From contig NIVC01000603.1 of assembly GCA_002269645.1 (NCBI GenBank), forward strand, positions 24,597 to 61,955: 37,359 bases of DNA, written 5' to 3'. The translations under genes were made by a program, and so were the position numbers. The stretch is from Macrostomum lignano. Lineage: Eukaryota. Below the pieces are notes generated by a model that saw nothing but the letters and a program-made list of their open reading frames with translations, was not told the DNA's origin and made no database searches. Below are positions 309 through 26,834 of this stretch, one piece after another (the first letter of the stretch is position 1; every line of letters starts with the position of its first letter).

Positions 309-1166
309 ACCCGCCATCAAGCGCATCAATTTCTGTACTCAATCTGCCAACCTGCGAGAACTCATCCGACGTATTGGTACAGTTCGCATCGTCTGCATCT
401 CTACCAGTGCCCGAGCACAGATGCAGCGCTGTTGGTGGCGGATTGGAAGTGCGAAACCTCACGCAGCTGTCATTTGTGAGTCGCTTGCATTTTGCACTTT
501 CACACTATGAGTGACTACGCGCTGACATGCTGACCAGCGAGCTTCATCAATTCCAGAGCTCGAGCGGCGACGGTTGGGTCAGCACGTGGGCACTGGCGAT
601 CGGAGGGAAGCTGAGCTCAGAGTGGCTTGTGGGCCTCATCGAGTGCAGCGCAGTGCAGAATCTGCCGCCGGAGATCCGGTTCAAGGCTGAGCACAGGGCC
701 TCAGCTTGCTACAGCTGCGGCAATCACAAAGGTCTCATCAAACCTGATGTGCAGTCCTTACGCATGTACATTTCACAGTTCTTGTACGGATTTCTAACAG
801 CAACTGCTCTGCTAAGTGTGCTCTTGCTTGTCTTGGTCTCGGTGAGTAACCCCTCTCTCTAAATGATATTTTCCGTCTCTGTGCTCTAAACTGCCGTGTT
901 GCATCTGCTAAATTCAGTTTTCAGTCATCAAATTCAGAGTAAATAAGTCGTGGACAAAACAAACTATTCCAATGGTAAGCTTTGGTTTTCTCAATCTGTA
1001 CAGTCGACTCAAACTGTGACAGCTAAAGTTCGAACTCTTTGCGCTTTAGTCTGATCGATCCACGACGCCTGGATCTGGAGCACCGGTTGCTGCCGCTTCT
1101 GCTGCCATGGAGTATGAGAACTCTGGTTACAACCTGGAGGATGCTACTGGTGTCTACGTGACCTGA
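309..1166 (+). CDS. Receptor copy A, coding exons 6-9 (third Ig-like domain, TM helix, Tyr-rich tail); exons 1-5 lie upstream of the window
   Basis: Exons 309-475, 557-841, 918-974, 1050-1166, all with AG/GT boundaries and compatible phases (1/0/0/0). Translation: PPSSASISVLNLPTC...GLIECSA...FLYGFLTATALLSVLLLVLVS|FSVIKFRVNKSWTKQTIPM|SDRS...MEYENSGYNLEDATGVYVT*. Exon lengths are identical to copy B. Confidence 0.8.
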
Positions 1167-2642: not shown

Positions 2643-2834
2643 CCATATGATATATAGTATTAGCCAATGCTAAACATAGCTGTGCCTTAAGCTACATCAT
2701 ATCTAGCCTAAAGTCTAAAAGCTAAGCACTGCAGGTCATTTGATGTTTTCAACAGTTTAATATTGGTCCAAGACTTTTTAAAACAAATTTATATTACCAT
2801 ACCTAATTTCATACTAAATTATATTAAAAAACAA

Positions 2835-3635
2835 CAATATACACCTCTTGCCGGCCACAAGTGGTCACAGAGGGGGGAGGTGTCAGAACACACGTCATTG
2901 GGCCGCACTTCTCAAAAATTCATCTCCTCCAGTCAGAGTCGGAACGGGGGTTCTCGCATCCTTCAGAAGCAGCTCGGGGTAGCGCGTCGTTTGCCATTGG
3001 CTTCGTCTCCGCGGACCCTACGCCGTTGACGTAGCGTTGACGTTGACCTAGCAGGTCGTGTAACGGCTCACGGCAGCGACTCTTCGACCGGATGACGTGG
3101 CCAGCCAGCTTGAGCCAGCTTGAGAGCGCAGCATCACAGAGTGCTCGGCGTAGAGCAGAGAACAGTCTCGACGACTGCCCGAAACAGCTGAGCCCTGGTC
3201 GCGTCATCCAGAGCCTCAGATCGCAGCACTGCGAGTGCACCGAGCGTAAGGCGTCTCCTCAAGTCACGGCGATATCAGGCACGAGTTCGCCGAGGTATAC
3301 AAAATGTGTGGAAGCGGGGTCTCATTCCTGACAGCATCTCGGCAGGTCCAGCGGCATAGTGAAGACTTCTGCGCGTGCAGCGTGAGAGGCCGACCATCGC
3401 TGCCGCTTTCGTCAAGCCATCCAGCAGCCGTTGGGCGCCTTCGACTGTTGAAGACACTGCAACGCTAGGTCATCCACGTAGCCGAGCACACAAAGACGCT
3501 TCTCCGGATGCCTCCGACTCATGCGACGTCTAAGCATGAAGCCATTGCCATCGTCCGACTCAGGCAGTCTGGTTCTCAGCACCCAGTACTCGTACGGTAC
3601 CAGCACAAATAGAAAAAGCGCCAGCGTGTCAACCT
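2835..3635 (-). mobile_element. 5'-truncated, decayed non-LTR retrotransposon (RTE-clade-like RT C-terminal region)
   Basis: Minus-strand frames give LFVLVPYEYWVLRT...GFMLRRRMSRRHPEKRLCVLGYVDDLAL (YADD-type motif), then STVEGAQRLLDGLTKAAAMVGL, FVYLGE and LKLAGHVIR, broken by frameshifts and stops. Absent from the homologous B-C spacer. End coordinates are approximate. Confidence 0.8.
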
Positions 3636-3977
3636 AAAGTAGTAATAATCTGCAGTACATGTACAAAGACAAGTAAACTGAGACAGTGTACCATTAAATT
3701 CGCATCTGGATTTTTGCACTTCCGAATTCCAAATAGAGCTCTGTCAGGCGAAATTTCAGCTGTTCCTGTCTGTTTGAAATTATTGAGTTATAGTTTAATA
3801 AAAGTTTCATCATTAAGCAACGATGCATTGCATAAATGCAAAAGAAAACTCTATTTCAGCAATTCCTATACTGGAGTTAAATTGGAGGAGTAAGTGGGCG
3901 CAGGGCCCAAACCGATATTTAATGGTATTTATACCAGACATTAACTTTGGGGGTTGAGCCCAGAATAATAAGGAGAG

Positions 3978-4008
3978 GGGGGCGGAGGGAGACTGGAGAG
4001 CCAATCAG
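3978..4008 (+). promoter_or_regulatory. GC box plus CCAAT box, possible promoter element upstream of copy B
   Basis: GGGGCGGAG at about 3978-3987 and CCAATCAG at 4001-4008, about 720 nt upstream of the ATG. Motif match only. Confidence 0.25.
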
Positions 4009-4056
4009 AAGGCGGCGAGGGAGACAGAGATAAGAATAACAAGATTGAGCTAGACA

Positions 4057-4320
4057 GAGGGCCTTTTCATATTGCTTGTTCTGGTTCCAGAACCAGAACC
4101 AATTTGTGAAGTATAACTTTTTGTCTCCATAACTAGAGGGAGATACGTGCTATAAAGTTTTTATTATTGAATGACAATCGCCAAGAAGAAAGTGAAAAAT
4201 TGTGCTAAGTGAGGTTGTTAAGGCAGTCAAACATTCAACAGAGTTAAATAGTTATACTGCTGTTTTTCTTGGAAGATCCGAACCGATTCTGATTCTGGAA
4301 TTGGTAATATGAAAAGCCTC
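4057..4320. mobile_element. MITE-like element with imperfect terminal inverted repeats
   Basis: CTTTTCATATT (4063-4073) is the reverse complement of AATATGAAAAG (4306-4316). Inner CCAGAACCAGAACC pairs imperfectly with GATTCTGATTCTGG. AT-rich non-coding interior. Confidence 0.5.
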
Positions 4321-4727
4321 AGAGAGAGAGGTGAACTAAGAAATGACTAGGAAAGTCGCGACACCTGCAGAGTCAGAGACGGCCAAGCAAACTCAGTCCC
4401 CATCGGAGCCAAGAAACCCAAATATGATTTTCGTCGCTTATTCAAACCAAGTTCAGTTTGGCCAAGGACTTCTATTATCTAGAAGTCCTTGGTTTGGCTA
4501 AGCTGCAGCCAGAGAGTTTGTAAACATTTTATTTCAACTTGCAGTCTTATACACAGATGGAACTTGTAGTCACCACCTGCCGGAACAGAACTTGCGACTG
4601 CAGCCCTGCATCAATGGTTTCTGCAGCCAAATACAAAAGCCATGACACAAGATCAAAATGGATTCTTTTTTGCTGCGCTTGTTGTACTAACGACAGAATT
4701 GCTTTGAAGTGATCAGCAAGTGTCTGC

Positions 4728-6949
4728 ATGATGGAAGCTGCAGCGCTGATATCCCTGTTAGGGGCTCTGCTCTGCATCGCTACCTGTCTCTGCGACTGTG
4801 AGTGAAAGCTTTTTAAACCCTCCAGGGTGTTTTTTCAAGCGAAATGGATTTCTAACTTCTCAAGTTCCTATGTTGCAGGTGGGGTGCCGATTCGCAACAA
4901 GACTGTACTCAACGCCTGGCAGTCCTCTTATTTCTATTCTTGCTTTCACGAGAGAGACCAGCTGAATGAGAGCAATGTTCTGAACACAAGCCAAAGTTTT
5001 CAGTTCATTCACAGCAATGACAAAAAGCATTTTAACGATAGCGGATTTCACTGGTTCGCTGTGCAGCTGAGTGAGTCAGTGCTCATCGGTTCTGTGACAG
5101 TGAAGGGCAGCGAGGGTGAGTTACACCACAGACCAGTTTTATGAAGCACTGATTGACTAGTTGGTTAACTTACTTGACATAGCTTCAGGGAGTCCGGGCA
5201 TCCGGATGCAGCGAGGCGTCGCCGCCCATTTTGCGAACCCCTGGCGACCAGGGAAGCTGGTGCTGCGGTGTTCTGCAGGGAGATCCGGTGGTGCCAGTGT
5301 CCGCAGCGCGGTAGCCCTTAGGTAGCGGACGAGCTGGCAGAGATTCTCGGGCCTGAAAACGTCGGAGAGGTCCGAGTTTGGGCTGAGGTAGGTGAAGCCT
5401 GTCCTGAGTAAAGGCGGAGCATTCACAGATGAAGTGCTCCGCATTCTCGACACCGGAGAGGCAGAAAGGGCATCATTCCTCGCTACGGATTTTTCCTGAA
5501 GGTAACGATGCCTGGCAAAACAGCCATGACCCGAGAGGTCCATGGTCACGGCCCTGATGTCCCTGCGGTTGAGTCCAAGCAGGACTCTTGGCTAGTTGGT
5601 TGATTTCATAAAAAACAGCAGCTGCTTTTTATTGACTGTCTAAGCTGGATGCTGTAATTTAACCCTAAAGTCATCGGTTCGCTTATGAAACTAAATCACT
5701 GCAGCATTCCTGAAACCCTCTTTCTTCCGGTATTTTTACAATCTCGTTGATCTGGCAATAATTTCAGTCTTCTCGGATGCTGAAATGTTCCGCAGCTCAG
5801 CTGGCATCGAGATCTGGACTTCGAACTCAGAGGAGCAACTGTTTTCTGGCAATCACTGCAACTCAAAAAATATGAGCAAACAGTTTAATAAGTACCTGAG
5901 CAGTTGGAAGCGTTGCGGTGTCACTACAAATAGGTCGATGAGTAGCACACGTAATGGGCTCTACATGGTGGACTGTCTTGCAGAGGTGAGCATTGATGCT
6001 ACAGAGATTATGTGCTTAATTAGTTCATCTCACCCGGATCTCAAAATGTTGAGTGCAACATCCCAGGTCCGGTATCTGCTCCTCAGGAGAAACGTGAGCC
6101 TGAGCTTCTCAGCCAGAGACTACGGCTATCTGAGCGTCTCAGATCTGACGCTGCAGACAGTGCGCCTGGGTGAGGCTGTGGACTTTCCCAAAGCACTTGA
6201 AGACCAGAGAAGCCTCAAAAGTGGCATGAAAATATCTGATAATATTGTGGGCTTTGGCCTGACTTTCTAGTCATCAGGCTTGTGCACTCTCTGTGCATTG
6301 GGGCTGGCCTTCATGGGTCATGAATGACACGAGAACTCCCACGGTAAATAGCATTATAGCATTAAAGTATAAATTTATATGACTTGATTTGCAGTACCAT
6401 CGACAGACCAACTTGTTGCTGCAAACGAAAGCTTTAACGTGAGCTGCTCGTGCATTCTATGCAACGGCACGGAGTTGAGCACGAACTCAAGGCAGCTGCA
6501 GCTGTGCCAACCAGACGGAAACTGCACGAAAACCTGGAAGCTGTCGGTTGTGAAGGCACAGTCGCAGCACTCTGGCCTCTACACCTGCCAGCTTGGCTCT
6601 GCCGCAGAGTCAACTTCCGTCACAGTGCTGTGTGAGCTGAGTGTCATTGCTTGTCTCCATATTTAAATACAATTAATAGACAAAAAGCAACCATAACGTG
6701 TTGAATTTTCAGCATCCTCGCATGCGCAAACAGCAGCCGAGAACGACAGTTTTGCAGTGAGCTGCACGCTGTACTTCAATGGTTCGGAGATCATTGGTAA
6801 CAACACAAGCGGCATGCAGCTGTGCCAACCAGATGGGAACTGCAGTGCGGGCCCGGAGCTGCGGATCAACAGGGCGCTGCGGCAGCACTCCGGCAGCTAC
6901 ACCTGCCAGGTGAACTCCACTCGAGTTTCAACCTTCGTTACCGTGCTGT
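4728..6949 (+). CDS. Receptor copy B, coding exons 1-5: signal peptide, F-type-lectin-like domain, Ig1, Ig2
   Basis: Exons 4728-4797 ([23 protein letters not shown], signal-peptide-like), 4879-5115, 5768-6169, 6395-6631, 6713-6949, all introns phase 1 with GTGAG donors. FTP motifs: AWQSS, ESNVLN, FIHS, HWFAVQL, IGSVTV, GIEIW, RYLLL, YLSVSDL. Ig F-strands: HSGLYTC and HSGSYTC. Many N-x-S/T sequons. Confidence 0.82.
5157..5601. mobile_element. GC-rich insertion of about 435 bp in intron 2, flanked by a 10-bp direct repeat
   Basis: CTAGTTGGTT at 5157-5166 and 5592-5601 brackets a GC-rich block in an otherwise AT-rich intron. No TIRs are visible. The same insertion is present in copy C. Confidence 0.45.
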
Positions 6950-7084
6950 GTGAGTTTCATTTCAATTTGAAATTGAATGGATAAAGAAAGGCCCTTTAAC
7001 TCATCTGAAATGTTTGTTATAGCCCAACAGAAACTTAGAAAATAAGTTTCCACTTGACTAAATAGCTTGTGATACAGATGATGA

Positions 7085-7140
7085 TGTCGTTGTGTTGTTG
7101 TTGCTGCTGCTGTTGTTGTTGTTGTTGTTTTTTTTTTGTT
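7085..7140. repeat. (TTG)n/(CTG)n/poly-T microsatellite
   Basis: Direct reading. The homologous stretch in copy C (about 26965-27007) is shorter and more interrupted. Confidence 0.85.
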
Positions 7141-7153
7141 GTGCTTTTAAACC

Positions 7154-9368
7154 TGATGTAACCGCCCTTGTCGCCTGTCCGCTCCGTAGAGAGACGAACG
7201 AGGGGGGGGGGAGACGAGAGAGGGGGCAATGACCGTAGGCTGCCTATGACCGGGCAATGACCTGACGGACCTCCAGCACCAGACTGTCCCGTCCACATGA
7301 TTGATAGCTTTGGTAGTGCTTCGTGACCAGAGGGCCAAGGACCCACATGGACCCCACCTGCAGCCAAGGTGCAAAACCTGCAGCAAAGGCTGCCACCACT
7401 CTATGTGACCTGGCGCACCTGGATCTTTCTACCAGACCTCTCGAGGCTAGAGCCCCGCCTGGGGTGGTTACCAGGAGATTTAGGCTAACAGGGGAGACAC
7501 ATGCAGCCGAGTACAGGGACTCTGCTTGGGGCATGATCGGGAACTCTGGGCTCAATCTGGAGGATTTCTCAGCAGGGGATCCTTTGTGGCTGTGAGCGAG
7601 GCTGACTTGCGACTTTGATTACTAAGAGTAGTATGAGGCGAACATCTACTGTCTCTAGTTTAGATTGCTCAGGGCGAAGGGACGCGTCAGCATGGGGGTT
7701 GCAACCTTCCTACTGCCATTCTGTGCCAAGACTCGCTAATCCCTCTACTGCACGCACACACGGCCCCGCAGCACGCACTCACAGACGAGCTTTGCACGGG
7801 GAGAGGCCATTAACTTACCCAAACTTCCCTATGCTTTGCCACCCCGGGAGAAAGGCTTAGCAAGCCATGAGTGAAATGATGGTGAAAGAGTGAATAATGA
7901 TGAGGTTAGTTAATAGTTAATAATTAGGCCCTTAGGCAAATAACCAGGCAATTAGGCGGCTTCACTATTGAGTAAAAATACAGCAAAAGGTACGGTATCA
8001 CAACTGGCTCAGCCCTCTAATCAGACAATGGAAAATAGGCAAACCCCGGATAAGCAAAGGCAATTAGAGCACAAATCAGTAACAGGAACTTACCGGCAGC
8101 TGCACAGAGAGAGAGAGAGAGAGAGAGACGGAGTGACCGAGGGTGGCTGTAGGCTGCAGTCAGGCGGACAGTGAAGCGGCGATGCGCTGAAGCGACGAGG
8201 CGCTGGTGTAGATCAGGCGAAGCTGATGATGCTGGGCGGTGTCAGACCGCTGGCCAATAGGCGAGCTCACTTGGGGAGCTGAAGATAACTTGGCGGTATC
8301 AGACCGCAGACCGGCAGGGATTCGTCTTATAGACGAATGGGTCAGAACTCAGTCTGACGGCAAGTCTAAAGAAAGACTAGGAGCCCGAAGGTGGGCAAAA
8401 GTTGAGTCTTCTCATGCCGAAAACCGCCTCCTTTTATAGCCTTCCCAGCCGCCGCTCCAAGGTCGTTTCCATGGCTCCCTCTCTCTGATTGGCTGCCGGC
8501 CGAATGACGTCAGAATGAGTCATGATGAGAAACATGAGACCGGCATAGCAACATGAGAAATAGGGAAATTGCGCAATCCGGAGGTGGGGTGGGGGGATAA
8601 TTGGCGCAGCGGGTGGTCGCGAAAGTGTTGCGCAAGCAAACATTGAGAACAATAGGGCTGGGGTCGAGAACAAAGGAATTGGAAATCGGGGATAATTGGG
8701 GAGAATCGAGAACAATAGAAAAGCAAACATTGGAGAAAAGGTGATAATTAGGTGCGAAAACGAGAACAAAAGAAAGAGAAAATCGGAGAAAATGTGATGA
8801 TTGGTGGGGTAAAGAGAACAAAAGAATCAAAAACGAGAACAATAGAAGCGGAGGTGGGTGGGTGTCGCATGAGAAATTTGGGGAGGAAAACAATAGCATG
8901 AGAAAAGGTTGCGCAAGAGAGGGGATGAGTCATCGATGAGTCATCGAGGGGAAGAAGGGGTCACACGACTTGCGTCACCGTTTGGGAGTTTGGGAAGGGA
9001 TGGGAGGTCGATGAGCACACAAAATACTGTAAGTAGACGCAGAGAAAGAGGGGACAGAGCAGGAAAATAGTGCAGAGAGAGACAAAGAGAGGGGGGATGG
9101 GGAAAGTACAAGAAGACTAGGGTGGAGCGCAGGGGAGATAAGGTAGAGGGGAGGTACAGAGAGGGATAGGGAGCTCCGGAAAGGCAGGTGTGGCGGCAGG
9201 GGAGACGGAGCCAAGGCAGCAGGAGGGTGCAGCAGAGCGGGAGTCTCCAGGCCTGGCCGGAGACCTAACCGAGTCTCGACAGCTCTGCGCAGGGGAGGTG
9301 CACGGGATAGGAGGCACCTTCGAAAAAGTTCCCATGCCCTATCCCGCGACCAGAGCGTGGTTACATCA
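7154..9368 (-). mobile_element. Solo-LTR-like element (Gypsy-type ends), 2215 bp
   Basis: Perfect 10-bp inverted termini TGATGTAACC (7154-7163) and GGTTACATCA (9359-9368), i.e. TG...CA. 4-bp target duplication AACC at 7150-7153 and 9369-9372. Internal minus-strand Pol II promoter motifs and no recognisable coding domain. Confidence 0.75.
8431..8522 (-). promoter_or_regulatory. LTR promoter: TATA box, CCAAT box, CRE and AP-1 sites, oriented antisense to copy B
   Basis: Minus strand TATAAAAG (8438-8431), CCAAT (8492-8488), TGACGTCA (8505-8512), TGAGTCA (8516-8522), with further TGAGTCA at 8926-8932 and 8937-8943. Confidence 0.6.
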
Positions 9369-9389
9369 AACCAATGAGATATAGTCAAG

Positions 9390-10460
9390 TCAGTTGGCAC
9401 GAGACGGGCAGGTTCGAGCCTGGCCAATCCAAACCAAGAAAGTTCGACAGAGAGAGAGTTGGAGCGCGCTAACCCGGCGAGACAAGCCATGCACAGCCGC
9501 CCTTGTATCCGAATCCCGAACAGATAGGTAGCGAAACACCGAGTTGTCCTTCCAGTCACCCAGCTTCTTGATGATCATCAGCAGTGGAACACCGAGCTGC
9601 ATGGCTGCTGTAGCGCCGCGCCGCCGCAGCCTGTGGCTAGTGAACTCACGTGGTGACAAACCCGCCGATGTGTACAGAGTGCGAAGCCGGCCATCAAACC
9701 TGCTAGCCGTCAGAGGCAAACATCCCGTTGCCGACCACGTGGAGAACAGGTGAACCGGACGCGGCGCCTGGCCGATTCGGTTTGTCCGTAGCTGCCGCTC
9801 GAGCGCACGGAACGGGCACAGGACACCCAAGCTCCCATCAGGCAGTTTCGGAAGAAACACTCGCTGAACTCGGTCGCCAAACTGGTTGGTCTTTGAATGC
9901 CGTACGGTGAGCTCACAGTCGCACTTTGAAAAGACGATGTTTGATGCCGCCAGGTTGCACCACAGATCTAGCCGCTCCGATTGCATCCGATCACATTCGC
10001 TTTCCGCAGCATACCCCACCAGGCTGCCAGAACAGCTGCCCAGAACGCGATGTCACTCTTCTTTCGTTGGTCCAGGTGGGCGTTCAGCTTGAGGAGATCT
10101 GCGATTCTGAGGGGCTCCCTTGAGCACTGCTACCGACTGAGACATCAGCGAAGACCACAGACCACAACGCACCAGCTTAACCATCGGCGACTCACACGGG
10201 TCCGGCCGACCGAGGGCTCTGAAGTACAGCGAGACCGCGTTAGCGTACGCCTGGCAACTCCGAAAGACTGACAGCCGGTGAACAACTCGGCCACTTACAC
10301 GGCCACGTGCACCGGCTGCGCGCGCACCGGTGTCAAGTGCTAGGAGTTGCAAAAACACAGCCAGGACGCGAGCTGCGACCGGTAACTCCGCTTTGTGTGG
10401 GGCCAGCAGGGCCGAACGGAGACAGCAGGGCAGAAAGCATGGCTGGCGATTTCATTAAAA
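9390..10460 (-). pseudogene. Tyrosine recombinase of the YR retrotransposon (frameshifted)
   Basis: Motifs across frames: TKRSYRSQ..WLCFC, YANAV..GRPDP, FWAAVLAAWWGMLRKAN (box I Arg near 10005), HSKTNQFG, LCPFRAL, FTSHRLRRRGAT (H-x-x-R), LGDWKDNSVFRY (catalytic Tyr 9528-9530). Confidence 0.9.
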
Positions 10461-10467
10461 CAGCAGT

Positions 10468-12014
10468 TTACAGTGCCATACACTCAAAATAAAAATCGCG
10501 CATCTTGCCTACCGCGTGCAGCCGAGAGCACGGGTCCGCAAAAACGAGGCACCAGCCAGGCATATGAAAAGTGCGCACCTCAACCCCACGCCTAACAGCA
10601 ATGAGCATGGCAGTCTGGAACAGCGGCTGCAACTCAGGCTGCCGGCAGCAACCTCTGTTATCATACCAACAGCCGCGACTACGACCGTAGTAGACCACGA
10701 CCGAACCGTCATTTAAAAAGACACTCCAGCGAACCATAGCCAATAGCGGAACAATAGCGTCTTTGTACGTGATATGCTTGTCTTTAAACTTTCCTCCAGC
10801 ATCCAGATCCCAATTGACATACAGCCAATCCATCATTCCGCTACCATTGCGCAAAATGGCACCACCACCAGCACTGCTGGCATCGGTTTCGATGATCCAG
10901 CCGTTTGTGCGACTTCTCCAAAGCTGAAAATCAGGCAGCTTCAGAAGGGCACCGCGCCACCAGAGTAAAATACGCACAGTGTCAGCGGACACTCGTACTT
11001 TGTGATGTGGCTTTTCCAGGGCATTAGGCAAGTCGAACAGGGGCCTGAGGAAGCAACTCCCAGCGTGCACCACTTGGACGACCCAGCTGAGCTTGCCACA
11101 AAGCGACGAAAGCTGGCGTTTCGAGAGACGCCTGCTCTGCGAGAAATTAAGCAGTGTGGTGCGCATTTCCTCACACTTTCCCGCCGGCACACTAAGAACT
11201 CCACGGACAGTATCAATCTTCACACCGAGATACACCAAGCATTGCGTAGGTTCAACCACTTTGTTCCAATTGACACCAAAACCCAACTGGCGAACCAACT
11301 TCATCAGTTCTTTCAGGGCATCCATACACTCCTCCTCGCTCTCGGCCGCAACCAGAAAATCATCCAGGTAGACCGAACTATTGGCCACACCGGTCGCACC
11401 ATCATCCTCTTGACCGCTTGAGTAAGCCGGTAGAAAATCTCGACCGAGGCGCAGCTACCAAAGGGTAGCCGGGTGTCGATTAGCCATGTCAGATCACGGT
11501 TGCCTTTAAAGCGCTAACCAATGCCAGTCGCCTGGTAATCATCCGGATGAATCGCCACACTTCTGTAAGCTTGCGACAAATCAAGCTTTGCCATGAACCA
11601 GCCCTTGCCGATAGAGGCTGCAGCCTTCTTGACGGACTCAAACTTAGGGCTCAGCTTCCTCGTATAAGTGTCTTTTACCGAGTAGCCCGGAGGCGTGCTG
11701 CAGTCATGAATAAGTCGAACCTTCCTGTTATCCTTGGGAATAGCTCCCAGAGGGCTGACCATCGTCGGCTTCTCAGGCACCACCACGTATCTGCCATTCT
11801 CAGTCTCTTCCTTAATTTGCAGCTTCGCAGAGTTCAGTTCTTGTCGAATGGTTCGCCTCATGGTGGGCCTCAAAACAGATACGGCAAACATGTCGGAATT
11901 TGCAGCTTGAAGTGCAAGTAGATCTCTAGCCCGTCTGCCGTTCTGAGGCTCTTGGGGTCTATTGGTTTTGAAAACGCTGCTGCCATGGCTGGGGCAATGA
12001 CTTGCTGACTCCAT
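10468..12014 (-). pseudogene. Reverse transcriptase / RNase H of the YR retrotransposon (stop plus frameshift)
   Basis: SPLGAIPK, RLIHDCSTPPG, MAKLDLSQAYR, then TAG at 11514-11516, then DTRLPFGS, a frameshift near 11391, YLDD (11359-11370), KVVEPTQCLVYLG, LCGKLSW and the RNase H motif IETDASSAGGG. Confidence 0.92.
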
Positions 12015-12912
12015 GGTTTGCTCGAGTTTCAGTTCTGATTAAGTGCTTAGCAACGAGTTGGAAAGACTCCTTGCCCCAGCACATACCAGTTTCAGCTTGC
12101 CTAGTGCGTTAGTCCTCTTCAAAACGGTTCACCTGAGCAAGGCCGAAGCCCGCGTCAAACAGCTCGCCTATCTGTATTGAGTAGCGTAGGTGATTCATCA
12201 AATCAGTCGTGTCGGCAATTCCATTCCTATTAGTCACCAGGGCACCATCCTTGATCATTTGCATCATCAGCCTGCCATTGCCTACCAAATACTGCGCTGC
12301 TGTGATGCTATTATGTTTTCTGCTCTTGTAAGTGATTCGGCCACCAAAATCATTAGCCAGCACCTCTTTCTGCTCAAAGCCGTCAAGGAAATCACGAATC
12401 AGGAGAGCCTTACGCCTGCCCGAACACTCCATCCGTTCATTAGCCCTGTTCCGTGACAACAATCTACCAAGCAGCTCATTGCCATTATCTTCCTGGTCTA
12501 ATCCAGCATCATCCCACACTTCAGGAAAGCAACTGGGGGCAGCAGGCTTGGCACACTCACCGCGATTCATAGGATGGACACTCGCGTTGCAGATCTCCGA
12601 TCTCCCTCTTGAGTTTAGCGGCTTCCTTGTGTAGCTGCAACAGTCTGATCTCCTCTTCCACCTTCGCGATGTCCTCGTCCAGGCCCGCCGCCGACTCCCG
12701 AGCCGCCTCCGTACTGATGTTGTCGTCTGCATCGGCTTCTTGCTCATATTGCTCCATGTTCTGCAATAGCGAGTCTGTTCACGACTGGTCTGGGGCCGCG
12801 AGCAAGGCGCTGACAAGGTCGGCCTTATTGCCCGACTGCTTACATTAGCGTGGGCACACAAGGCTTGCAGAGCCACCTTGCTCAGGTGCATGAGTTTCAC
12901 GCGGTCCGCCAT
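11850..12912 (-). pseudogene. gag-like ORF of the YR retrotransposon (stops and frameshifts)
   Basis: ITAAQYLVGNGRLM, HLRYSIQIGEL, FEED*RTRQAETGMCWG (TAA at 12109-12111 where Tyr is expected), and a C-terminal Cys/His knuckle CKFRHVCRICFEAH (11863-11904) overlapping the RT start. Confidence 0.7.
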
Positions 12913-13262
12913 TGCAAAAAGAATCGATACGCACTTGGCAGGCCATAGGCAGCCCGCCCCACATTAAATAAAGGCACATAAACCGGGGGCACGGGACCAA
13001 AGGCCCGGCCCACCACCCCCCTGCACCAACGCACAAGAGCCACCCCCACTGGTTTAACACCCAACCAAGCTACGCCCGGCCGGACCAGTTATTATTTAAG
13101 CTCAATCATCCCTCTTATTTGCAAAAAAGTTGCTGTGCAAACATCTGCTGTGCAGAAGTCTGGCCCAGCCAAATTAACCAATAAATCCGCCTTAATTCGA
13201 TAACTGAAAAGCTTATTGATCGAACTTGATGAACTCCATTCCCCTTTTTAATACGCTCACAG

Positions 13263-14120
13263 ACCCGCCATCAAGCGCATCAATTTCTGTACTCAATCTG
13301 CCAACCTGCGAGAGCTCATCCGACGTATTGGTACAGTTCGCATCGTCTGCATCTCTACCAGTGCCCGAGCACAGATGCGGCGCTGTTGGTGGCGGATTGG
13401 AAGTGCGAAACCTCACGCAGCTGTCATTTGTAAATTGCTTGCATTTTGCACTTTCACACTATGAGTGACTATGCGCTGACATGCTGACCAGCGAGCTTCA
13501 TCAATTCCAGAGCTCGAGTGGAGACGGTTGGGTCAGCACGTGGGCACTGGCGATCGGGGGGAAGCTGAGCTCAGAGTGGCTTGTGGGCCTCGTCGAGTGC
13601 AGCGCAGTGCAGAATCTGCCGCCGGAGATCCGGTTCAAGGCCGAGCACAGGGCCTCAGCTTGCTACAGCTGCGGCAATCACAAAGGTCTCATCAAACGTG
13701 ATGTGAAGTCCTTACACATGTACATTTCACAGTTCCTGTACGGATTTCTAACAGCAACTGCTCTGCTAAGTGTGCTCTTGCTTGTCTTGGGCTCGGTGAG
13801 TAACCCCTCTCTCTACATTATATTTTCCGTCTCTGTGCTCTAAGCTGCCGTGTTGCATCTGCTAACTTCAGTTTGCAGTCATCAAATTCAGAGAAAAGAA
13901 GTCGTGGACAAAACAAACTATTCCAATGGTAAGCTTTGATTTTCTCAATCTGTACAGTCGACTCAAACTGTGACAGCTAAAGTTCGAACTCTTTTCGCTT
14001 TAGTCTGATCGATCCGAGACGCCCGGATCTGGAGCACCGGTTGCTACCGTTTCTGCTGTCATGGAGTATGAGAACTCTGGTTACAACCTGGAGGATGCTA
14101 CTGGTGTCTACGTGACCTGA
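13263..14120 (+). CDS. Receptor copy B, coding exons 6-9: Ig3, TM helix, Tyr-rich tail (continuation of 4728-6949)
   Basis: Exons 13263-13429, 13511-13795, 13872-13928, 14004-14120. Exon 5 (phase 1) joins to give VL|YPPSSAS. The joined CDS is about 1809 nt (602 aa plus stop) with no internal stop. Confidence 0.8.
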
Positions 14121-14139: not shown

Positions 14140-17100
14140 GTGATCCTGATCCTGATCCTGATCCCGATCCTGATCCTGATCTTGATCTTGATCTTGATCC
14201 TGATCCTGATCCTGATCCTGATCCCGAACCTGATCCTGATCCTGATCATGATCCTGATCCTGATCCTGATCCTGATCCTGATCCTGATCCCGATCCTGAT
14301 CCTGATCTTGATCTTGATCTTGATCCTGATCCTGATCCTGATCCTGATCCCGAACCTGATCCTGATCCTGATCATGATCCTGATCCTGATCCTGATCCTG
14401 ATCCTGATCCCGATCCTGATCCTGATCCTGATCTTGATCCTGATGCTGATCCTGTCCTGATCCTGATCCCGATCCTGATCCTGATCTTGATCTTGATCTT
14501 GATCCTGATCCTGGATCCTGATCCTGGATCCTGATCCTGATCCTGATCCCGATCCTGATCCTGATCCTGATCCTGATTCTGATCCCGAACCTGATCCTGA
14601 TCCTGATCCTGATCCTGATCCCGAACCTGATCCTGATCCTGATCATGATCCTGATCCTGATCCTGATCCTGATCCTGATCCCGATCCTGATCCTGATCCT
14701 GATCTTGATCCTGATGCTGATCCTGTCCCGATCCTGATCCTGATCTTGATCTTGATCTTGATCTAGATCCTGATCCTGGATCCTGATCCTGGATCCTGAT
14801 CCTGATCCTGATCCCGATCCTGATCCTGATCCTGATCCTGATTCTGATCCCGAACCTGATCCTGATCCTGATCCTGATCCTGATCCCGAACCTGATCCTG
14901 ATCCTGATCTTGATCCTAATCCTGATCCTGATCCTGATTCTGATCCCGAACCTGATCCTGATCCTGATCCTGATCCTGATCCCGAACCTGATCCTGATCC
15001 TGATCTTGATCCTAATCCTGATCCTGATCCTGATTCTGATCCCGAACCTGATCCTGATCCTGATCCTGATCCTGATCCCGAACCTGATCCTGATCCTGAT
15101 CTTGATACTAATCCTGATCCTGATCCTGATCCTGATCCTGATCCTGATCCTGATCCTGATCCTGATCCTGATCTTGATCCTGATGCTGATCCTGTCCTGA
15201 TCCTGATCCTGATCCTGATCTTGATCCTGATCCTGATCCTGATCCTGATCCTGTCCCGATCCTGTCCCAATCCTGTCCTGATCCTGATCGTGTCCTGATC
15301 TTGATCTTGATCCTGATCCCGATCCTGATCTTGATCTTGATCTTGATCCTGATCCTGATCCTGATCCTGATCCTGATCCTGATCTTGATCTTGATCTTGA
15401 TCCTGATCCTGATCCTGATCCTGATCCTGATCCCGATCCTGATCTTGATCCTGATACTGGTCCTGATCCTGATTCTGATCCTGATCCTGATGCTTATCCT
15501 GATCCTGATCCTGATACTGGTCCTGATCCTGATTCTGATCCTGATCCTGATGCTTATCCTGATCCTGATCCTGATCCTGATCCTGATCCCGATCCTGATC
15601 CTGATCCTGATCCTGATCCCGATCCTGATCCTGATCTTGATCTGGATCTTGATCCTGATCCTGGATCCTGATCCTGGATCCTGATCCTGATCCTGATCCC
15701 GATCCTGATCCTGATCCTGATCCTGATCCTGATTCTGATCCTGATCCTGATCCCGATCCTGATCCTGATCCTGATCTTGATCCTGATCCTGATCCTTATC
15801 CTGATCCTGTCCCGATCCTGTCCCAATCCTGTCCTGATCCTGATCGTGTCCTGATCCTGATCCTCATTCTGATCCCGAACCTGATCCTGATCCTGATCCT
15901 GATCCTGATCCCGAACCTGATCCTGATCCTGATCTTGATCCTGATCCCGATCCTGATCCTGATCTTGATCTTGATCCTGATCCTGATCCTGATCCCGATC
16001 CTGATGCTGATCCTGTCCTGATCCTGATCCTGATCCTGATCTTGATCCCGCTCCCGATCCTGATCCTGATCTTGATCTTGATCCTGATCCTGATCCTGAT
16101 TTTGATCCTGATGCTGATCCTGTCCTGATCCTGATCCTGATCCTGATCCTGATCCCGCTCCCGATCCTGATCCTGATCTTGATCTTGATCCTGATGCTGA
16201 TCCTGTCCTGATCCTGTCCTGATCCTGATCCTGATCCTGATCCTGATCTTGTTCCTGATTCTGATCCTGATCCTGATCCTGATCCTGATCCTGATCCTGA
16301 TCCTGATCCTGATTTTGATCCTGATCCTGATCCTGTCCTGATCCTGATCCTGATTCTGATCCTGATTTTGATCCTGATGCTGATCCTGTCCTGATCCTGA
16401 TCCTGATCCTGATCCTGATCCTGATCTTGTTCCTGATTCTGATCCTGATCCTGATCCTGATTCTGATCGTGTCCTGATCCTGATCCTGATCCTGATCCTG
16501 GTCCTGATCCTGTCCTGATCCTGATCCTGATCCCGCTCCCGATCCTGATCCTGATCCCGCTCATGATCCTGATCCCGCTCATGATCCTGATCCCGCTCAT
16601 GATCCTGATCCCGCTCATGATCCTGGTCCTGATCCTGTCCTGATCCTGATCCTGATCCCGCTCCCGATCCTGATCCTGATCCCGCTCATGATCCTGATCC
16701 CGCTCATGATCCTGATCCCGCTCATGATCCTGATCCCGCTCACGATCCTGATCCTGATCTTGATCTTGATCCTGATGCTGATCCTGATTCTGATCCTGAT
16801 CCTGATCCTGATCCTGATCCTGTCCTGATCCTGATCCTGATCCTGATCCTGATCTTGATCCTGATCCTGATCCTGATCCTGATCCCGATCCTGATCCTGA
16901 TCCTGATCTTGATCCTGATCCTGATCCTTATCCTGATCCTGTCCCAATCCTGTCCTGATCCTGATCGTGTCCTGATCCTGATCCTCATTCTGATCCCGAA
17001 CCTGATCCTGATCCTGATCCTGATCCTGATCCCGAACCTGATCCTGATCCTGATCTTGATCCTGATCCCGATCCTGATCCTGATCTTGATCTTGATCCTG

Positions 17101-20100: not shown

Positions 20101-20654
20101 CCTGATCCTGATCCTGATCCTGATCCTGATCCTGATCCTGATTTTGATCCTGATCCTGATCCTGTCCTGATCCTGATCCTGATTCTGATCCTGATTTTGA
20201 TCCTGATGCTGATCCTGTCTTGATCCTGATCCTGATCTTGTTCCTGATTCTGATCCTGATCCTGATCCTGATTCTGATCGTGTCCTGATCCTGATCCTGA
20301 TCCTGATCTTGATCTTGATCCTGATCCTGATCCTGATCCTGATCCTGGTCCTGATCCTGGTCCTGATCCTGATCCTGATCCTGATCCTGATTTTGATCCC
20401 GATGCTGATCCTGTCCTGATCCTGATCCTTATCCTGATCCTGATCCCGCTCCCGATCCTGATCCTGATCTTGATCTTGATCCTGATGCTGATCCTGATTC
20501 TGATCCTGATCCCGCTTATGATCCTGATCCCGCTCACGATCCTGATCCTGATCTTGATCTTGATCCTGATGCTGATCCTGATTCTGATCCTGATCCTGAT
20601 CCTGATCCTAATCCTGATCCTGATCCTGAGCCTAATTCGATTTATTGTTCTCAG
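14140..20654 (+). other. Probable 3'-UTR intron of copy B filled by the hexamer array
   Basis: GTGATC donor 19 nt after the TGA. CCTAAT at 20631-20636, then TTTATTGTTCTCAG ending at 20654, the same signals as in copy A. Confidence 0.5.
14141..20629 (+). repeat. (GATCCT)n hexanucleotide array, about 6.5 kb, with higher-order duplicated blocks
   Basis: Direct reading. A landmark containing GTCCCAATCC recurs near 15266, 15822, 16943, 18419 and 19031. An 18-mer GCTCATGATCCTGATCCC is clustered near 16560-16740, 17720-17925, 18140-18220 and 19730-19795. Confidence 0.98.
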
Positions 20655-20884
20655 TTCATGAGGATGTGTTTATCCCAGAGCTATATTTACCGTACTCATA
20701 GGCCAATATATTTTATTTTACTGCGCTTGATACACATTAGAAATAAGGACGCAGCACTCCCGAATACTGTAAAACAGTTTTGAAGCCGACAGTACAATTA
20801 CCAATATCACCTGATCTGTTTGATACAGAAGCAAAATTCTTTTGATAGTTTTTTCAGAATTTATTCACAATTCACCTTTTTGCC

Positions 20885-20890
20885 AATAAA
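20885..20890 (+). terminator. Candidate polyadenylation signal (AATAAA) of copy B
   Basis: Homologous to 2637-2642 in copy A. Confidence 0.45.
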
Positions 20891-21164
20891 CATTGTATTA
20901 TATACAATAGTAATAGATAATGCAAAAAACCTATCTGTTCGAAGCTACATTACTACATCATATCTGGCCTAAAATACAAAGGCTAAACACTGAAGGTCTC
21001 TTGATGTTTTAAACATTTTTTTCATTAGACTGACTTTTCATTTGATCAAATTTATAACACCATACCAAAATTTGGGATATAAAATTTGGTAAATTTATTT
21101 TATATTAATTAATAATTAATATATTAATCTGACGTTGCTTTTGTGATCCGGCAGCGTACTCTGT

Positions 21165-21184
21165 TGTTGTTGTTGTTGTTGTTA
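21165..21184. repeat. (TTG)n microsatellite
   Basis: Direct reading. Confidence 0.85.
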
Positions 21185-21794
21185 TATTATTCTATACATA
21201 TTATATATATTTATTTATTAAATTTTATTTTTTAATTACTCAACTTACTTTTTATTAACATAATACCAAATTAACAATGCAACAATGCCAATTGAAGGCC
21301 ATAGCAGTAGAACCGGTTTAAAAAATGCTAAAATTACATCATAACCTGCAGTACATGTAGAAAGACCACAAACTGAGGCTGTTTAAAATTAAATTCGCGT
21401 CTGTTTGTTCGAGGCAATCAAGCAAAGTTTCGAATAAAGTTCAGCTGTTCCTGTCTGTTTGAAATAATTAGTTTAATGAAGTTTCATCATTAAGCGAAGA
21501 TGCTTAAAAATAATGTAACATACCTATTTGTTCCTAGCTAAAATCCTACCGATTAATCCCCTAATAGTCTACTTTAAGTAGCGTTGACTGCCCCAAACTA
21601 TGATTCTTTCCTACAAATCTCTAGTTCACGCGGTTTTCTTAAAAGAGCCTCGTGATAGCGTTTAGTGCCCGAGCGGTTCCCTAACTAAGTCCGAAAGTCC
21701 GAAAGTTTTCCGAGGATCAAGGGTGTCCAACGATAGCCCCCTATTGCCTAATTCCTTAGCGCCTAATATCTATTATTAGCTTGTACGGCTTTCT

Positions 21795-23287: not shown

Positions 23288-24665
23288 TTTGAGAAACAGA
23301 ATGTTCTCTAGGGCAGCTTCTGTCACTGTTGCTGAGTGAGATGTTTATCGAGCAAGAGGCCGATCCCTGTTTTGAGAGCATTCTGTGTTCAACTGTGAAG
23401 CAATTACCGATTTGGCCTTCCTATGCAAACCCTCCGTCGAACTTGTCTATCACTGTGTTGAGGCCGAAGACCTGCCAAAACCTGTCTGAAGTGACGGCGA
23501 CTCGAGCTGAACTTGGAACAGAACAGCAGCGTGTGCAGCTAAATTGCAGCCGACTTCGCAATTCTTTGAAAGCCACACAGCAAGCAGCCGCAGATGAAGA
23601 ACCTCAAGATGCTGGCTCCGCCATGGTACCTACTGATGGTACATACGGATGCGTATCATTTAGGCTCAATTTTCTTGTTGGTTTAAGCAAATACAAAGTG
23701 CCTATTTGGTATCTGGAAAGCTCAAACAATTTCGTAACTTCGTTTCCCAAAAGTTCATCCCCAGCAACCCCTTGAGCCCAGCAACCCCCTGGAGTACAGC
23801 TATGCTCAGAGCTTCCGGCTGCGCTTTCGGTCTCAACGATTAACTGGGAATCTGAGAGCGAGTGCACCGTGTAATTGATAATGAGGCCAATTTCAGTGTG
23901 ATGACATGTGATTTGTGCTGGTGCGTTTGAAGGCGGCTTAAACGACCCCCAACTCATCTGGGCTTACAAACGCGGGCTGTACATGCCTGACGATCAGACA
24001 CCTTGTGAGAGCGCAAGTGTAACTGTGAGAATACATGAATCCGTGTACGTGCGTATGAAAGATTTTAAACTTAATCAATAGCCGAATATCGATAATTCAT
24101 TCCAATTTGTCCCTACGCTTGTATCAATGCTTTCTCTTCTTTCTAAACTGATTAATTGAAATCAAATATTCTTTTTGAATGATATTTCAGTCTGTTAACA
24201 GTAAAAGTTTGTTAAATTTAATCGGATTTTCCGAGTCTTCATCCAGATCATTTCTCATCATACTTCATATCCATTTTTCTTGAAACAAAAGAATATGTTC
24301 AAGTGGTGTCATTTGTTAAATTACATAATGCGACATTTGTACCTGCAGAGACGGCCAAGCAAACTCAGTCCCCGACCCATCGGAGCCAGGAAACCCAAAT
24401 ATGATTTTCGTCGCTTATTCCAAGCCAAGTTCAGTTTGGCTAAGCTGCAGCCAGACAGAGAGTTTGTAAACATTTTGTTTCAACTTGCAGTCTTATACAC
24501 AGATGGAACTTGTAGTCACCACCTGCCGGAACAGAACTTGCGACTGCAGCCCCGCATCAATGGTTTCTGCAGCCATATAAAAAAGCCACGACACAAAATG
24601 GATTCTTTTTGCTGCGCTTGTTGTACTAACGGCAGAATTGCTTTGAAGTGATCAGCAAGTGTCTC

Positions 24666-26834
24666 ATGGAAGCTGCAACGCTGATATCCCTGTTAGGGGC
24701 TGTGCTCTGCATCGCTACCTGTCGCTGCGACTGTAAGTGAAAGCTTTTTAAACCCTCCAGGGTGTTTTTCTCAAGTGAAATGGATTTCTAACTTCTCAAG
24801 CTCCTATGTTGCAGGTGAGGTGCCGATTCGCAACAAGACTGTACTCAACGCCTGGCAGTCCTCTTATTTCTATTCTTGCTTTCACGAGAGAGACCAGCTG
24901 AATGAGAGCAATGTTCTGAACACAAGCCAAAGTTTTCAGTTCATTCACAGCAATGACAAAAAGCATTTTAACGATAGCGGATTTCACTGGTTCGCTGTGC
25001 AGCTGAGTGAGTCAGTGCTCATCGGTTCTGTGACAGTGAAGGGCAGCGAGGGTGAGTTACACCACAGACCAGTTTTATGAAGCACTGATTGACTAGTTGG
25101 TTAACTTACTTGACATAGCTTCAGGGGGTCCGGGCATCCGGATGCAGCGAGGCGTCGCCGCCCATTTTGCGAACCCCTGGCGACCAGGGAAGCTGGTGCT
25201 GCGGTGTTCTGCAGGGAGATCCGGTGGTGCCAGTGTCCGCAGCGCGGTAGCCCTTAGGTAGCGGACGAGCTGGCAGAGATTCTCGGGCCTGAAAACGTCG
25301 GAGAGGTCCGGGTTTGGCCGAGGTAGGTGAAGGCTGTCCTGAGTAAAGGCGGAGCATTCACAGATGAAGTGCTCCGCATTCTCGACACCGGAGAGGCAGA
25401 AAGGGCATCATTCCTCGCTACGGATTTTTCCTGAAGGTAACGATGCCTGGCAAAACAGCCATGACCCGAGAGGTCCATGGTCACGGCCCTGATGTCCCTG
25501 CGGTTGAGTCCAAGCAGGACTCTTGGCTAGTTGGTTGGTTTCATAAAAAACAGCAGCTGCTTTTTGAAACAAAATAACTGAGGTAGCAGCATTCCTGAAA
25601 CCCTCTTTCTTCCGGTATTTTTACAATCTCGTTGTTCTGGCAATAATTTCAGTCTTCTCGGATGCTGAAATGTTCCGCAGCTCAGCTGGCATCGAGATCT
25701 GGACTTCGAACTCAGAGGAGCAACTGTTTTCTGGCAACCATTGCAACTCAAAAAATATGAGCAAACAGTTTAATAAATACCGGAGCAGTTGGAAGCGTTG
25801 CGGTGTCACTACAAATAGGTCGATGAGTAGCACGCGTGGTGGGCTCTACATGGTGGACTGTCTTGCAGAGGTGAGCATTGATGCTACAGAGATTATGTGC
25901 TTAATTAGTTCATCTCACTCGGATCTCAAAATGTTGAGTGCAACATCCCAGGTCCGGTATCTGCTCCTCAGGAGAAACGTCAGCCTGAGCTTCTCATCCA
26001 GAGACTACGGCTATCTGAGCGTCTCAGATCTGACGCTGCAGACAGTGCGCCTGGGTGAGGCTGTGGACTTTTCCAAAGCACTTGAAGACCAGAGAAGCCT
26101 CAAAAGTGGCATGAAAATATCTGATAATATTGTGAGCTTTGGCCTGACTTTCTAGTCATCAGGCTTGTGCACTCTCTGTGCATTGGGGGCTGGCCTTCAT
26201 GGGTCATGAATGACACGAGAACTCCCACGGTAAATAGCATTATAGCATTAAAGTATAAATTTATATGACTTGATTTGCAGTGCCATCGACAGACCAACTT
26301 GTTGCTGCAAACGAAAGCTTCAACGTGAGCTGCTCATGCATTCTATGCAACGGCACGGAGTTGAGCACGAACTCAAGGCAGCTGCAGCTGTGCCAACCAG
26401 ACGGAAACTGCACGAAAACCCGGAAGCTGTCGGTTGTGAAGGCACAGTCGCAGCACTCTGGCCTCTACACCTGCCAGCTTGGCTCTGCCGCAGAGTCAAC
26501 TTCCGTCACAGTGCTGTGTGAGCTGAGTGTCATTGCTTGTCTCCATATTTAAATACAATTAATAGACAAAAGCAACCATAACGTGTTGCATTTTCAGCAT
26601 CCTCGCATGCGCAAACAGCAGCCGAGAACGACAGTTTTGCAGTGAGCTGCACGCTGTACTTCAATGGTTCGGAGATCATTGGTAACAACACAAGCGGCAT
26701 GCAGCTGTGCCAACCAGATGGGAACTGCAGTGCGGGCCCGGAGCTGCGGATCAACAGGGCGCTGCGGCAGCACTCCGGCAGCTACACCTGCCAGGCGAAC
26801 TCCACTCGAGTTTCAACCTTCGTTACCGTGCTGT
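24666..26834 (+). CDS. Receptor copy C, coding exons 1-5 (exons 6-9 are not in the window)
   Basis: Exons 24666-24732, 24815-25051, 25653-26054, 26281-26517, 26598-26834, with the same phases and (exons 2-5) the same lengths as copy B and an open frame. About 10 aa differences from B by eye. Confidence 0.8.
25093..25536. mobile_element. Copy of the intron-2 insertion with 10-bp direct repeats
   Basis: CTAGTTGGTT at 25093-25102 and 25527-25536. Near-identical to 5157-5601. Confidence 0.45.

Follow-up and report, generated by a model that had tools for sequence, protein, structure and literature searches.

A candidate lectin-headed, immunoglobulin-stalked membrane receptor encoded in a tandem gene cluster of the flatworm Macrostomum lignano

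Contig NIVC01000603.1 of Macrostomum lignano carries, at positions 4728-14120 of the 37,359-nucleotide (nt) window studied here (the whole stretch of DNA that was analyzed, to which all coordinates refer), a gene that we regard as very probably real and built as described below. Its predicted product runs from a signal peptide through an F-type-lectin-like head, two immunoglobulin (Ig) domains and a membrane-proximal β-sandwich to a transmembrane (TM) helix and a cytoplasmic tail of 51 amino acids (aa). We consider it reasonably likely that 4728-14120 is an intact gene for a type I membrane glycoprotein with a lectin-like head on an Ig stalk, working as a recognition or adhesion receptor with phosphotyrosine signaling. 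The parts of this protein are known, and their combination and the family that shares it are undescribed. At present the gene is of value as a well-defined candidate rather than as a discovery.

The gene model was obtained from three-frame translation and inspection of splice sites. All of its features lie on the forward strand, from an ATG at 4728 to a TGA stop at 14118-14120. The preferred model joins 10 exons into a protein of 575 aa; all 10 exons are open, 18 of the 18 splice sites are canonical GT-AG, and the junctions are phase-compatible. Exon 1 (4728..4797) holds the start codon and the signal peptide (aa 1-23, strongest hydrophobic window aa 4-22) and ends in phase 1. The lectin-like domain (aa 24-209) begins in exon 2 (4879..5115; WQSS ... 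FIHS ... FHWFAVQL), continues in exon 3 (5768..5985; IEIWTS ... C ... C ... VDC) and is completed by exon 4 (6067..6169; ... LTLQTVRL), which ends in phase 1. Exon 5 (6395..6631) and exon 6 (6713..6949) are each 237 nt long, enter and leave in phase 1 and encode one Ig-like domain of 79 aa apiece (together aa 210-367). Beyond the 6.3-kb intron 6 (6950..13262), exon 7 (13263..13429) and exon 8 (13511..13795; VECSAVQ ...) supply the first and second halves of the membrane-proximal β-sandwich, termed here the Ig3-like domain. For exon 8, another acceptor that keeps the frame exists 15 nt upstream of 13511. The TM helix begins at 13733 within exon 8 and ends at 13889 in exon 9 (13872..13928), which also encodes the basic stop-transfer sequence IKFREKK and the juxtamembrane tail; the acceptor that keeps the frame of this exon is 13872, not 13879. 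Exon 10 (14004..14120) encodes the cytoplasmic tail with its three-tyrosine motif, EYENSGYNLEDATGVYVT, at 14064-14117.

The model differs in one respect from the initial annotation of this stretch, which had joined nine exons into a protein of about 602 aa. Its coordinates, phases and open frame were reproduced to the base, and treating the 81-nt intron 3 (5986..6066) as coding gives exactly 602 aa without a stop. This intron is in frame, stop-free and bounded by GT-AG, and its retention places 27 spurious residues inside the lectin-like domain. It is removed in the annotated copies P0004 and P0035, which read 'MVDCLAE|VRYLLL' across it, and the spliced length without it agrees with paralogue P0002. 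Because the annotated paralogous copies splice it out, the 10-exon, 575-aa model is preferred. The junctions between exons 2 and 3, 3 and 4, 4 and 5, and 5 and 6 recur in the independently annotated P0004 and P0035, and the codon split between exons 6 and 7 (Y) gives 'VLYPP', matching 'VLYPPLSVSISV' of P0001.

The head is, by its sequence, a divergent member of the F-type lectin/discoidin branch of the galactose-binding-like superfamily and is closest to F-type lectins. A profile of 13 family members (A5) was run against the full set of 177,635 distinct PDB sequences; at E ≤ 10 it matched six chains, each of them an F-type lectin domain: MsaFBP32 (3cqo, E = 1.9e-4), lectinolysin (3le0, E = 7e-4; 4gwi, E = 1.3e-3), the eel agglutinin AAA (1k12, E = 6.5e-3) and the pneumococcal fucolectin-related protein (2j22, E = 0.041; 2j1r, E = 0.14). 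This similarity belongs to the family profile; phmmer with the single window protein against the PDB gave no head match, only two weak matches to DPR Ig domains. The blocks that align with F-type lectins are WQSS/ASQSS, F-x-H-S, HWFAVQL/WWxVDL, SVTV/SVTI and R ... IEI, and exon 2, the most conserved block of the family, aligns to the WWxVDL and SVTI strands of the PDB F-type lectins. Weak Pfam matches among the 13 members point to the same superfamily, with F5_F8_type_C in 4 and F5_F8_type_C_2 in 3, all below threshold; the best paralogue matches (PF22633, E = 0.002; PF00754, E = 0.0026) stay under the gathering score.

An AlphaFold2 model of the head was built on P0004 with eight sequences. 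P0004 is identical to the window gene over aa 26-209, and the model is therefore effectively one of the window gene. It reached a predicted TM-score (pTM) of 0.69, and all 50 Foldseek matches listed from the PDB are galactose-binding-like jelly rolls (E from 2.7e-4, TM 0.3-0.64), among them IFT25, CBM32, XRCC1-N, the EndoS CBM, SUN and neuropilin b1. With the profile finding F-type lectins only and the fold matching jelly rolls of this superfamily, the F-type-lectin-like N-terminal domain proposed in the initial annotation is borne out, and we think homology of the head to F-type lectin domains likely.

Behind the head, Ig1 and Ig2 are, as judged from profile and motif, true Ig domains. Both contain the B-strand Cys and the F-strand motif 'HSG-x-Y-T-C', and C18, G61, Y63 and C65 are invariant in the family Ig alignment. 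Ig2 (aa 287-361) is matched by Pfam Ig_2 at E = 1.9e-5 (25.2 bits, under the cut-off of 27), and ig, V-set, I-set and Ig_3 match the same stretch. Ig1 accounts for the weak phmmer matches of the single protein, which are to the Ig domains of DPR1 and DPR4. A family Ig profile of six sequences (A7) matched 258 PDB sequences at E ≤ 1, of which the 60 listed belong without exception to the Ig superfamily (IgSF), with Robo2 the best (E = 9.6e-8) and DPR4, titin, VEGFR1, contactin and Fc receptors among the others. The third ectodomain (aa 368-497, exons 7-8) was modeled with AlphaFold2 on the homologous domain of P0001 (~40% identity) in place of the window protein. The model shows eight strands (mean predicted local distance difference test, pLDDT, 72.6; pTM 0.67); a β-sandwich of Ig-like topology, and with it the label 'Ig-like', is plausible. 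Thus, of the three Ig-like domains first proposed, two are recognized by sequence profile, and the third, which gives no sequence signal, has a weak fold-level match.

Membrane topology is marked by two hydrophobic peaks, at aa 4-22 (signal peptide) and at aa 498-524, where the TM helix, FLYGFLTATALLSVLLLVLGSFAVIKF, is followed by REKK. The protein contains 18 N-x-S/T sequons, all of them in the ectodomain, compared with 6.5 ± 2.2 in shuffled sequences, and none of 2000 shuffles reached 18. The tail contains the tyrosines Y559, Y564 and Y573. Its last 18 residues are nearly invariant among paralogues that share 37-40% identity; aligned with P0001 and P0011 they read (D/E)YENS(G/E)Y(N/K)LE(D/N)A(T/A)G(V/I)Y(V/I)x, with 12 of the 18 positions invariant, and the juxtamembrane part of the tail has diverged. 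A motif scan of the tail found one YxN (Y559-E-N), the consensus of Grb2-type Src homology 2 (SH2) ligands. The pattern TxYxx(V/I), of the immunoreceptor tyrosine-based switch motif (ITSM) type, occurs in other branches of the family, in P0002 (TVYLEI) and P0027 (TEYLDI). The signal peptide, the abundant N-glycosylation sequons, the hydrophobic helix followed by basic residues and the three tail tyrosines that the initial annotation had read from the DNA are thus all present, and the end of the tail is conserved in paralogues as well. That the tail signals through phosphotyrosine is possible, somewhat short of an even chance.

The gene belongs to a tandemly clustered family. The window contains at least three copies at 94-95% DNA identity, of which 4728-14120 is copy B. 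Upstream on the forward strand, copy A (309..1166) comprises exons 7-10 only, the 3' end of a gene; downstream, likewise on the forward strand, copy C (24663..26834) comprises exons 1-6. Both are open and keep their splice sites, at DNA identities of 95% and 94%, respectively, and copy C differs from copy B at 10 positions over 367 aa. Substitutions diagnostic of copy B include L146, N165 and W257. Copy B is homologous to the other copies up to 7100 and again from 13199, and intron 6 of copy B therefore holds a 6.1-kb insertion, without which it would measure ~215 nt. Near-identical fragments of the copy B gene already exist in UniProt, uncharacterized and inconsistently named. P0004 (UniRef A0A1I8H5Z6) equals the window protein over exons 2-4 except for its own first residue, and P0035 (A0A1I8ITB8) is a near-identical copy spanning exons 2-6 with identical junctions.

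More distant members keep the same plan. P0001 and P0011 (37-45% identity) have the head, the Ig3-like domain, the TM helix and the tail in the order of the window protein, and P0001 additionally has one Ig domain. P0001, P0002 and P0016 also begin with signal-like peptides. A second, divergent cluster on the unrelated Mlig_3_7 contig NIVC01002544.1 (GCA_002269645.1; 10001-21231, locus L001) contains at least three tandem family genes that differ in Ig number. Two of them are ordered head, Ig, Ig, Ig3-like, the first also with a short match to the tail; P0002, the sole annotated gene there, consists of head, TM helix and tail with no Ig domain. A fragment on the opposite strand is present there as well, at 2083-2196.

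Several results weigh against the receptor explanation or narrow it, and the alternatives are best judged alongside them. The isolated head of the single window protein has no Pfam match even at E ≤ 10, its model has a low mean pLDDT of 62.9, and no F-type lectin structure is among the top 50 Foldseek matches, so that the fold is matched only at the level of the superfamily. F-type lectins bind fucose through HX24RXDX4(R/K) and carry the calcium motif h2DGx (PMC5712786). A regular-expression search of the window protein did not find HX24RXDX4(R/K), and the calcium motif ([VAI][VAI]DG[NDS]) is absent from aa 24-209, where the region aligned to 'AIDGN' of AAA is an unrelated loop. When the triad was mapped onto AAA by hmmalign, Arg79 corresponds to Ser (KGS-E-V) and Asp81 to Val in the window protein. 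Arg86 also corresponds to Ser, the column before it holding an Arg, and His52 to Lys, the column after it holding a His; the His52 column is not conserved in paralogues. The 'FIHS' His of the family was considered for the role of the fucose-binding His and discarded, since its counterpart in the alignment is the upstream 'FYHG/GHHS' His and not that of 'CTHS', and the 'xxHS' correspondence drawn in the initial annotation accordingly does not identify the fucose-binding residue. Canonical binding of fucose and calcium by the window copy is unlikely from these alignments and, with Arg79 and Asp81 replaced and the calcium motif missing, 'lectin' may be a misnomer for the function. We hold it rather doubtful that the head binds carbohydrate.

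These losses feed the strongest alternative, to which we give roughly one chance in three: that the head is a generic galactose-binding-like or discoidin-like module binding protein or lipid, and that the protein is a homophilic or heterophilic adhesion molecule and not a glycan sensor. The triad and the calcium site are not conserved in the window copy, some of the top Foldseek matches (IFT25, XRCC1-N, SUN, neuropilin b1) are members of the fold that bind proteins, and the paralogues match F5_F8_type_C about as well as F5_F8_type_C_2. There is also precedent in the membrane proteins Furrowed and CG9095, whose F-type lectin domains lost triad residues (PMC5712786). Against this alternative, the profile similarity is specific to F-type lectins, and both triad Arg are retained in P0002 and P0020 at the columns of Arg79 and Arg86. 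The paralogue consensus likewise retains both Arg columns, and P0002 in addition keeps the Asp of R-x-D, reading R-E-D ... R without His at the triad His column. Some members of the family may therefore still bind sugar. The stalk and the tail raise reservations of their own. The third ectodomain has no Pfam match, its profile returned noise only from the PDB (JAM-A, E = 0.47), and the best PDB Foldseek matches of the P0001 model, to VH/VHH domains, are weak (E = 0.008-0.03, TM 0.3-0.48). The window tail was scanned for [SIVL]xYxx[IVL], YxxL/I-x6-12-YxxL/I and TxYxx[VI], and the scan found no immunoreceptor tyrosine-based inhibitory motif (ITIM), no activation motif (ITAM), no ITSM, no YxxPhi and no NPxY in it. 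A reading of the tail as ITIM or ITAM was accordingly dropped, the scan having found neither.

Whether copy B is a working gene bears on a further alternative, that it is a young non-functional duplicate, unexpressed or a decaying pseudogene, whose frame time has not yet broken. The copies are ~2% apart and their exons diverge as much as their introns (2.4% against 1.9% substitutions), a comparison that is uninformative as a test of constraint. The 6.1-kb insertion, which includes a retroelement, has no counterpart in the aligned parts of copies A and C; a 6.5-kb microsatellite begins 21 nt past the stop codon of copy B, the spacer between copies B and C holds a decayed family relic (~22400-23800), and no full-length annotated protein for the copy B locus is among the homologue matches obtained. 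Against decay stand the 10 open exons and 18 canonical splice sites, the position of the insertion, which is intronic and antisense, and the pattern of indels between copies: none across 1,728 coding nt, whereas the introns show 66 gap columns over 1,294 nt. The ratio of nonsynonymous to synonymous divergence (dN/dS, Nei-Gojobori) between copies is 0.56 overall, 0.26 in the head, 0.21 in Ig1-2 and 0.38 in the third domain, and exceeds 1 in the signal peptide and the TM/juxtamembrane region, figures that rest on 2-6 substitutions per class and, because these counts are very small, lend constraint weak support. The deep conservation of the architecture across paralogues at 30-55% identity is the stronger argument for a constrained gene. 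We regard the pseudogene explanation as improbable, and copy B itself as likely to be expressed and functional.

A chimera is far less probable still. In that case exons 1-6 would form a secreted lectin-like/Ig protein ending by read-through, and exons 7-10 would be separate. The idea draws on P0004, which reads through the exon-4 donor to a stop, on P0035, which does the same at the exon-6 donor, and on the 6.3 kb between exons 6 and 7. That distance shrinks to an intron of only ~215 nt once the insertion is discounted. Moreover, exon 6 ends and exon 7 starts in phase 1 with the same split codon as in P0001 ('VLYPP'), exons 7-10 are without a start codon or signal peptide of their own, and P0001, P0011 and two L001 genes join the same parts in the same order.

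The family is narrowly distributed. An exhaustive search of 1.84 billion representative proteins with the head profile gave 23 matches at E ≤ 1e-3. Among the 19 strong or family-like matches, 18 are M. lignano proteins and the remaining one, P0014, comes from a JGI metagenome contig; two weak non-family matches, P0023 and P0024 (E ~4e-4), carry F5_F8_type_C/F5_F8_type_C_2 domains. The only relative outside M. lignano lies on an AT-rich environmental contig of 1598 nt (L002; Ga0450804_0569779, JGI metagenome 3300040801). Its head-domain exons are in tandem and precede an Ig exon whose final residues are 'VTVVCEF', with the donor context of 'VTVLCEF' in the window, and the family is therefore present in at least one other organism. 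A metagenome scan with the pattern FHWFAVQ (alignment A2) found no relative. The named head-domain family proteins are all from M. lignano, in agreement with the lineage-specific receptor first suggested.

The same receptor had been put forward as a candidate for an undescribed one. No description of the family, of its architecture or of the paralogue locus tags was found in the literature searched, but fragments of the genes are already in UniProt as uncharacterized proteins. The UniProt names of P0004-P0010, P0012, P0018, P0019, P0022 and P0026 contradict one another (fibrinogen C-terminal, MATH, CUB, SRCR, Sushi, ricin B, Pep_M12B_propep, IRS-type PTB, coatomer zeta). Pfam scans of the members tested reproduced none of these domain names, and the names of family fragments are therefore unreliable. 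Reviews of F-type lectins list CTLD, pentraxin, CCP, transmembrane and FA58C as partners of the domain, with Ig not among them (PMC5712786, PMC12221842), and the combination of an F-type lectin domain with Ig domains and a TM helix is not listed in these reviews or in a lectin survey (PMC5712786, PMC12221842, PMC8878817). The closest partial counterparts lie in several known systems, from which the window protein differs in distinct ways.

Known F-type lectins are mostly secreted proteins with single or tandem domains; the window head is fused to Ig domains, a TM helix and a tyrosine tail. The PDB proteins detected by the family profile are confined to AAA (1K12), MsaFBP32 (3CQO), Streptococcus lectinolysin and the F-type lectin domains of SpGH98, and they share with the head the blocks A-x-QSS, F-x-H-S/G, W-W/F-x-V-D/Q-L, SVT-I/V and R ... 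EI as well as the jelly-roll fold of the galactose-binding-like superfamily. The window protein has neither their fucose motif nor their calcium motif nor a Pfam match, and its head of ~185 aa has longer loops than the F-type lectin domain of ~140 aa (PMC5712786). Drosophila Furrowed and CG9095 resemble it in being type I membrane proteins with an N-terminal F-type lectin domain, a reuse of the lectin fold in a surface receptor, and CG9095 shows a similar loss of binding-motif residues (PMC5712786). Their stalk consists of a C-type lectin domain and many complement control protein (CCP)/sushi repeats, whereas that of the window protein consists of Ig domains; Pfam found no C-type lectin or Sushi/CCP domain in the window protein, no sequence similarity was seen outside the head, and the tail is unrelated.

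Gastropod VIgLs are secreted proteins. They form multigene families that unite IgSF domains and a lectin-type domain in one polypeptide, as the window family does. These lophotrochozoan molecules (FREP, CREP, GREP, QREP, HREP) place Ig domains N-terminally and a lectin domain of the fibrinogen, C-type, galectin, C1q or H type C-terminally, and FREPs, GREPs and CREPs are described as gastropod-restricted (PMC8878817). The order given for FREP, CREP and GREP in the initial annotation agrees with this survey (PMC8878817). In the window protein the order is reversed and the head is F-type-like, which VIgLs never are, and a membrane anchor and a signaling-type tail are added; an N-terminal Ig with a C-terminal fibrinogen, C-type or galectin domain was not found in it. 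The Siglec, CEACAM and Fc receptors and Hydractinia Alr likewise have an Ig ectodomain, a single TM helix and a short tail with conserved tyrosines, and their genes, too, are recent duplicates clustered in tandem and varying in Ig number. The membrane-distal domain of the window protein is a jelly roll and not a V-set Ig, and its tail is without ITIM, ITAM or ITSM; its paralogues P0002 and P0027 do carry TxYxx(V/I). Finally, DDR, neuropilin and Caspr are likewise type I membrane receptors tipped by a galactose-binding-like domain. F5_F8_type_C is the commonest weak Pfam match of the family and neuropilin b1 is among the fold matches; however, the window protein has no kinase, CUB, MAM or laminin-G domain, and at the level of the PDB its profile similarity goes to F-type lectins, not to discoidin domains.

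As we picture the receptor, the protein would stand at the cell surface with its Ig stalk holding the lectin-like head off the membrane, where the head would bind an extracellular ligand. A non-fucose glycan or a protein would be a more likely ligand than classical L-fucose, because neither the fucose triad nor the calcium site is complete in the window copy. Engagement could then cause the conserved tail tyrosines to be phosphorylated and SH2 adaptors to be recruited, and the YxN site of the tail would fit an adaptor of the Grb2/Drk type. The protein would thus serve in recognition or adhesion, as a receptor from a family that duplicates rapidly. A bolder proposal, which we think improbable, is that the membrane-anchored 'lectin-head on Ig-stalk' receptors are a previously unrecognized family, perhaps specific to the Macrostomum lineage, whose tandem, quickly duplicating genes of variable Ig number make up a diversified recognition system signaling through a private three-tyrosine tail motif. 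The roles this would imply, in immune non-self recognition, allorecognition or gamete/partner recognition, are equally speculative. If true, the family would be a flatworm counterpart, independently invented, of the gastropod VIgLs and the cnidarian Alr receptors. Flatworm innate recognition receptors are poorly known. M. lignano is an outcrossing hermaphrodite and is genetically tractable by RNA interference and transgenesis. The architecture would be new both to the lophotrochozoan molecules that combine lectin and Ig domains (VIgL-like) and to the few membrane-anchored F-type lectin proteins (Furrowed, CG9095), and the conserved 18-residue tyrosine tail offers a handle for finding a downstream adaptor.

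The locus is also rich in inserted and repetitive DNA. The inserted sequence in intron 6 (7100-13199, ~6.1 kb) contains a degenerate DIRS-like retroelement (9390..12912) on the reverse strand, antisense to the gene, with fragments of gag-like, reverse transcriptase and tyrosine recombinase open reading frames (ORFs). These ORFs (9390-10019, 10468-11388, 11514-12014 and 12109-12912, reverse strand) contain frameshifts and match Pfam RVT_1 at E = 1.2e-6 and Phage_integrase at E = 5e-5, both just below the curated cut-off; terminal repeats of the element were searched for and none were found. A purine-rich block at 8655-8854, also within this insertion, contains five degenerate 31-nt repeats. Arrays of (TGATCC)n begin 21 nt past the stop codons of copy B (14141-20633, ~1090 units, 6.5 kb) and copy A (1187-2383, ~203 units). 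The first AATAAA/ATTAAA past the stop lies beyond the array in both, at 20885 for copy B and 2637 for copy A; from this arrangement, the 3' untranslated region of copies A and B would either run through the microsatellite or use a non-canonical poly(A) signal.

The spacers between copies are homologous only at their ends, at ~85% (2301-2809 with 20550-21072, and 4374-4799 with 24346-24734). Their middles differ (2809-4374 and 21072-24346), and the repeat units have therefore been remodeled since duplication. The AT-rich spacer between copies B and C (GC 0.35) contains a 33-bp tandem repeat of ~5 copies at 21883-22047. In tblastn, the decayed relic in this spacer is weakly matched by Ig and Ig3-like exons (22450-22494, 22849-22917 and 23431-23493), and its ORF fragments read '...DTCQLGSANSSP' and 'ANPPSNLSITVLRPKTCQNLSEV'. 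Intron 6 of copy C is filled by a 34-bp minisatellite (AAGCATCGAACTTGGATCTGGCTCAGCCCGATTA; ~303 copies at 99% identity, 27051-37359), which runs past the end of the window, and a short degenerate trace of the same minisatellite is visible by eye in copy B at ~13100-13230.

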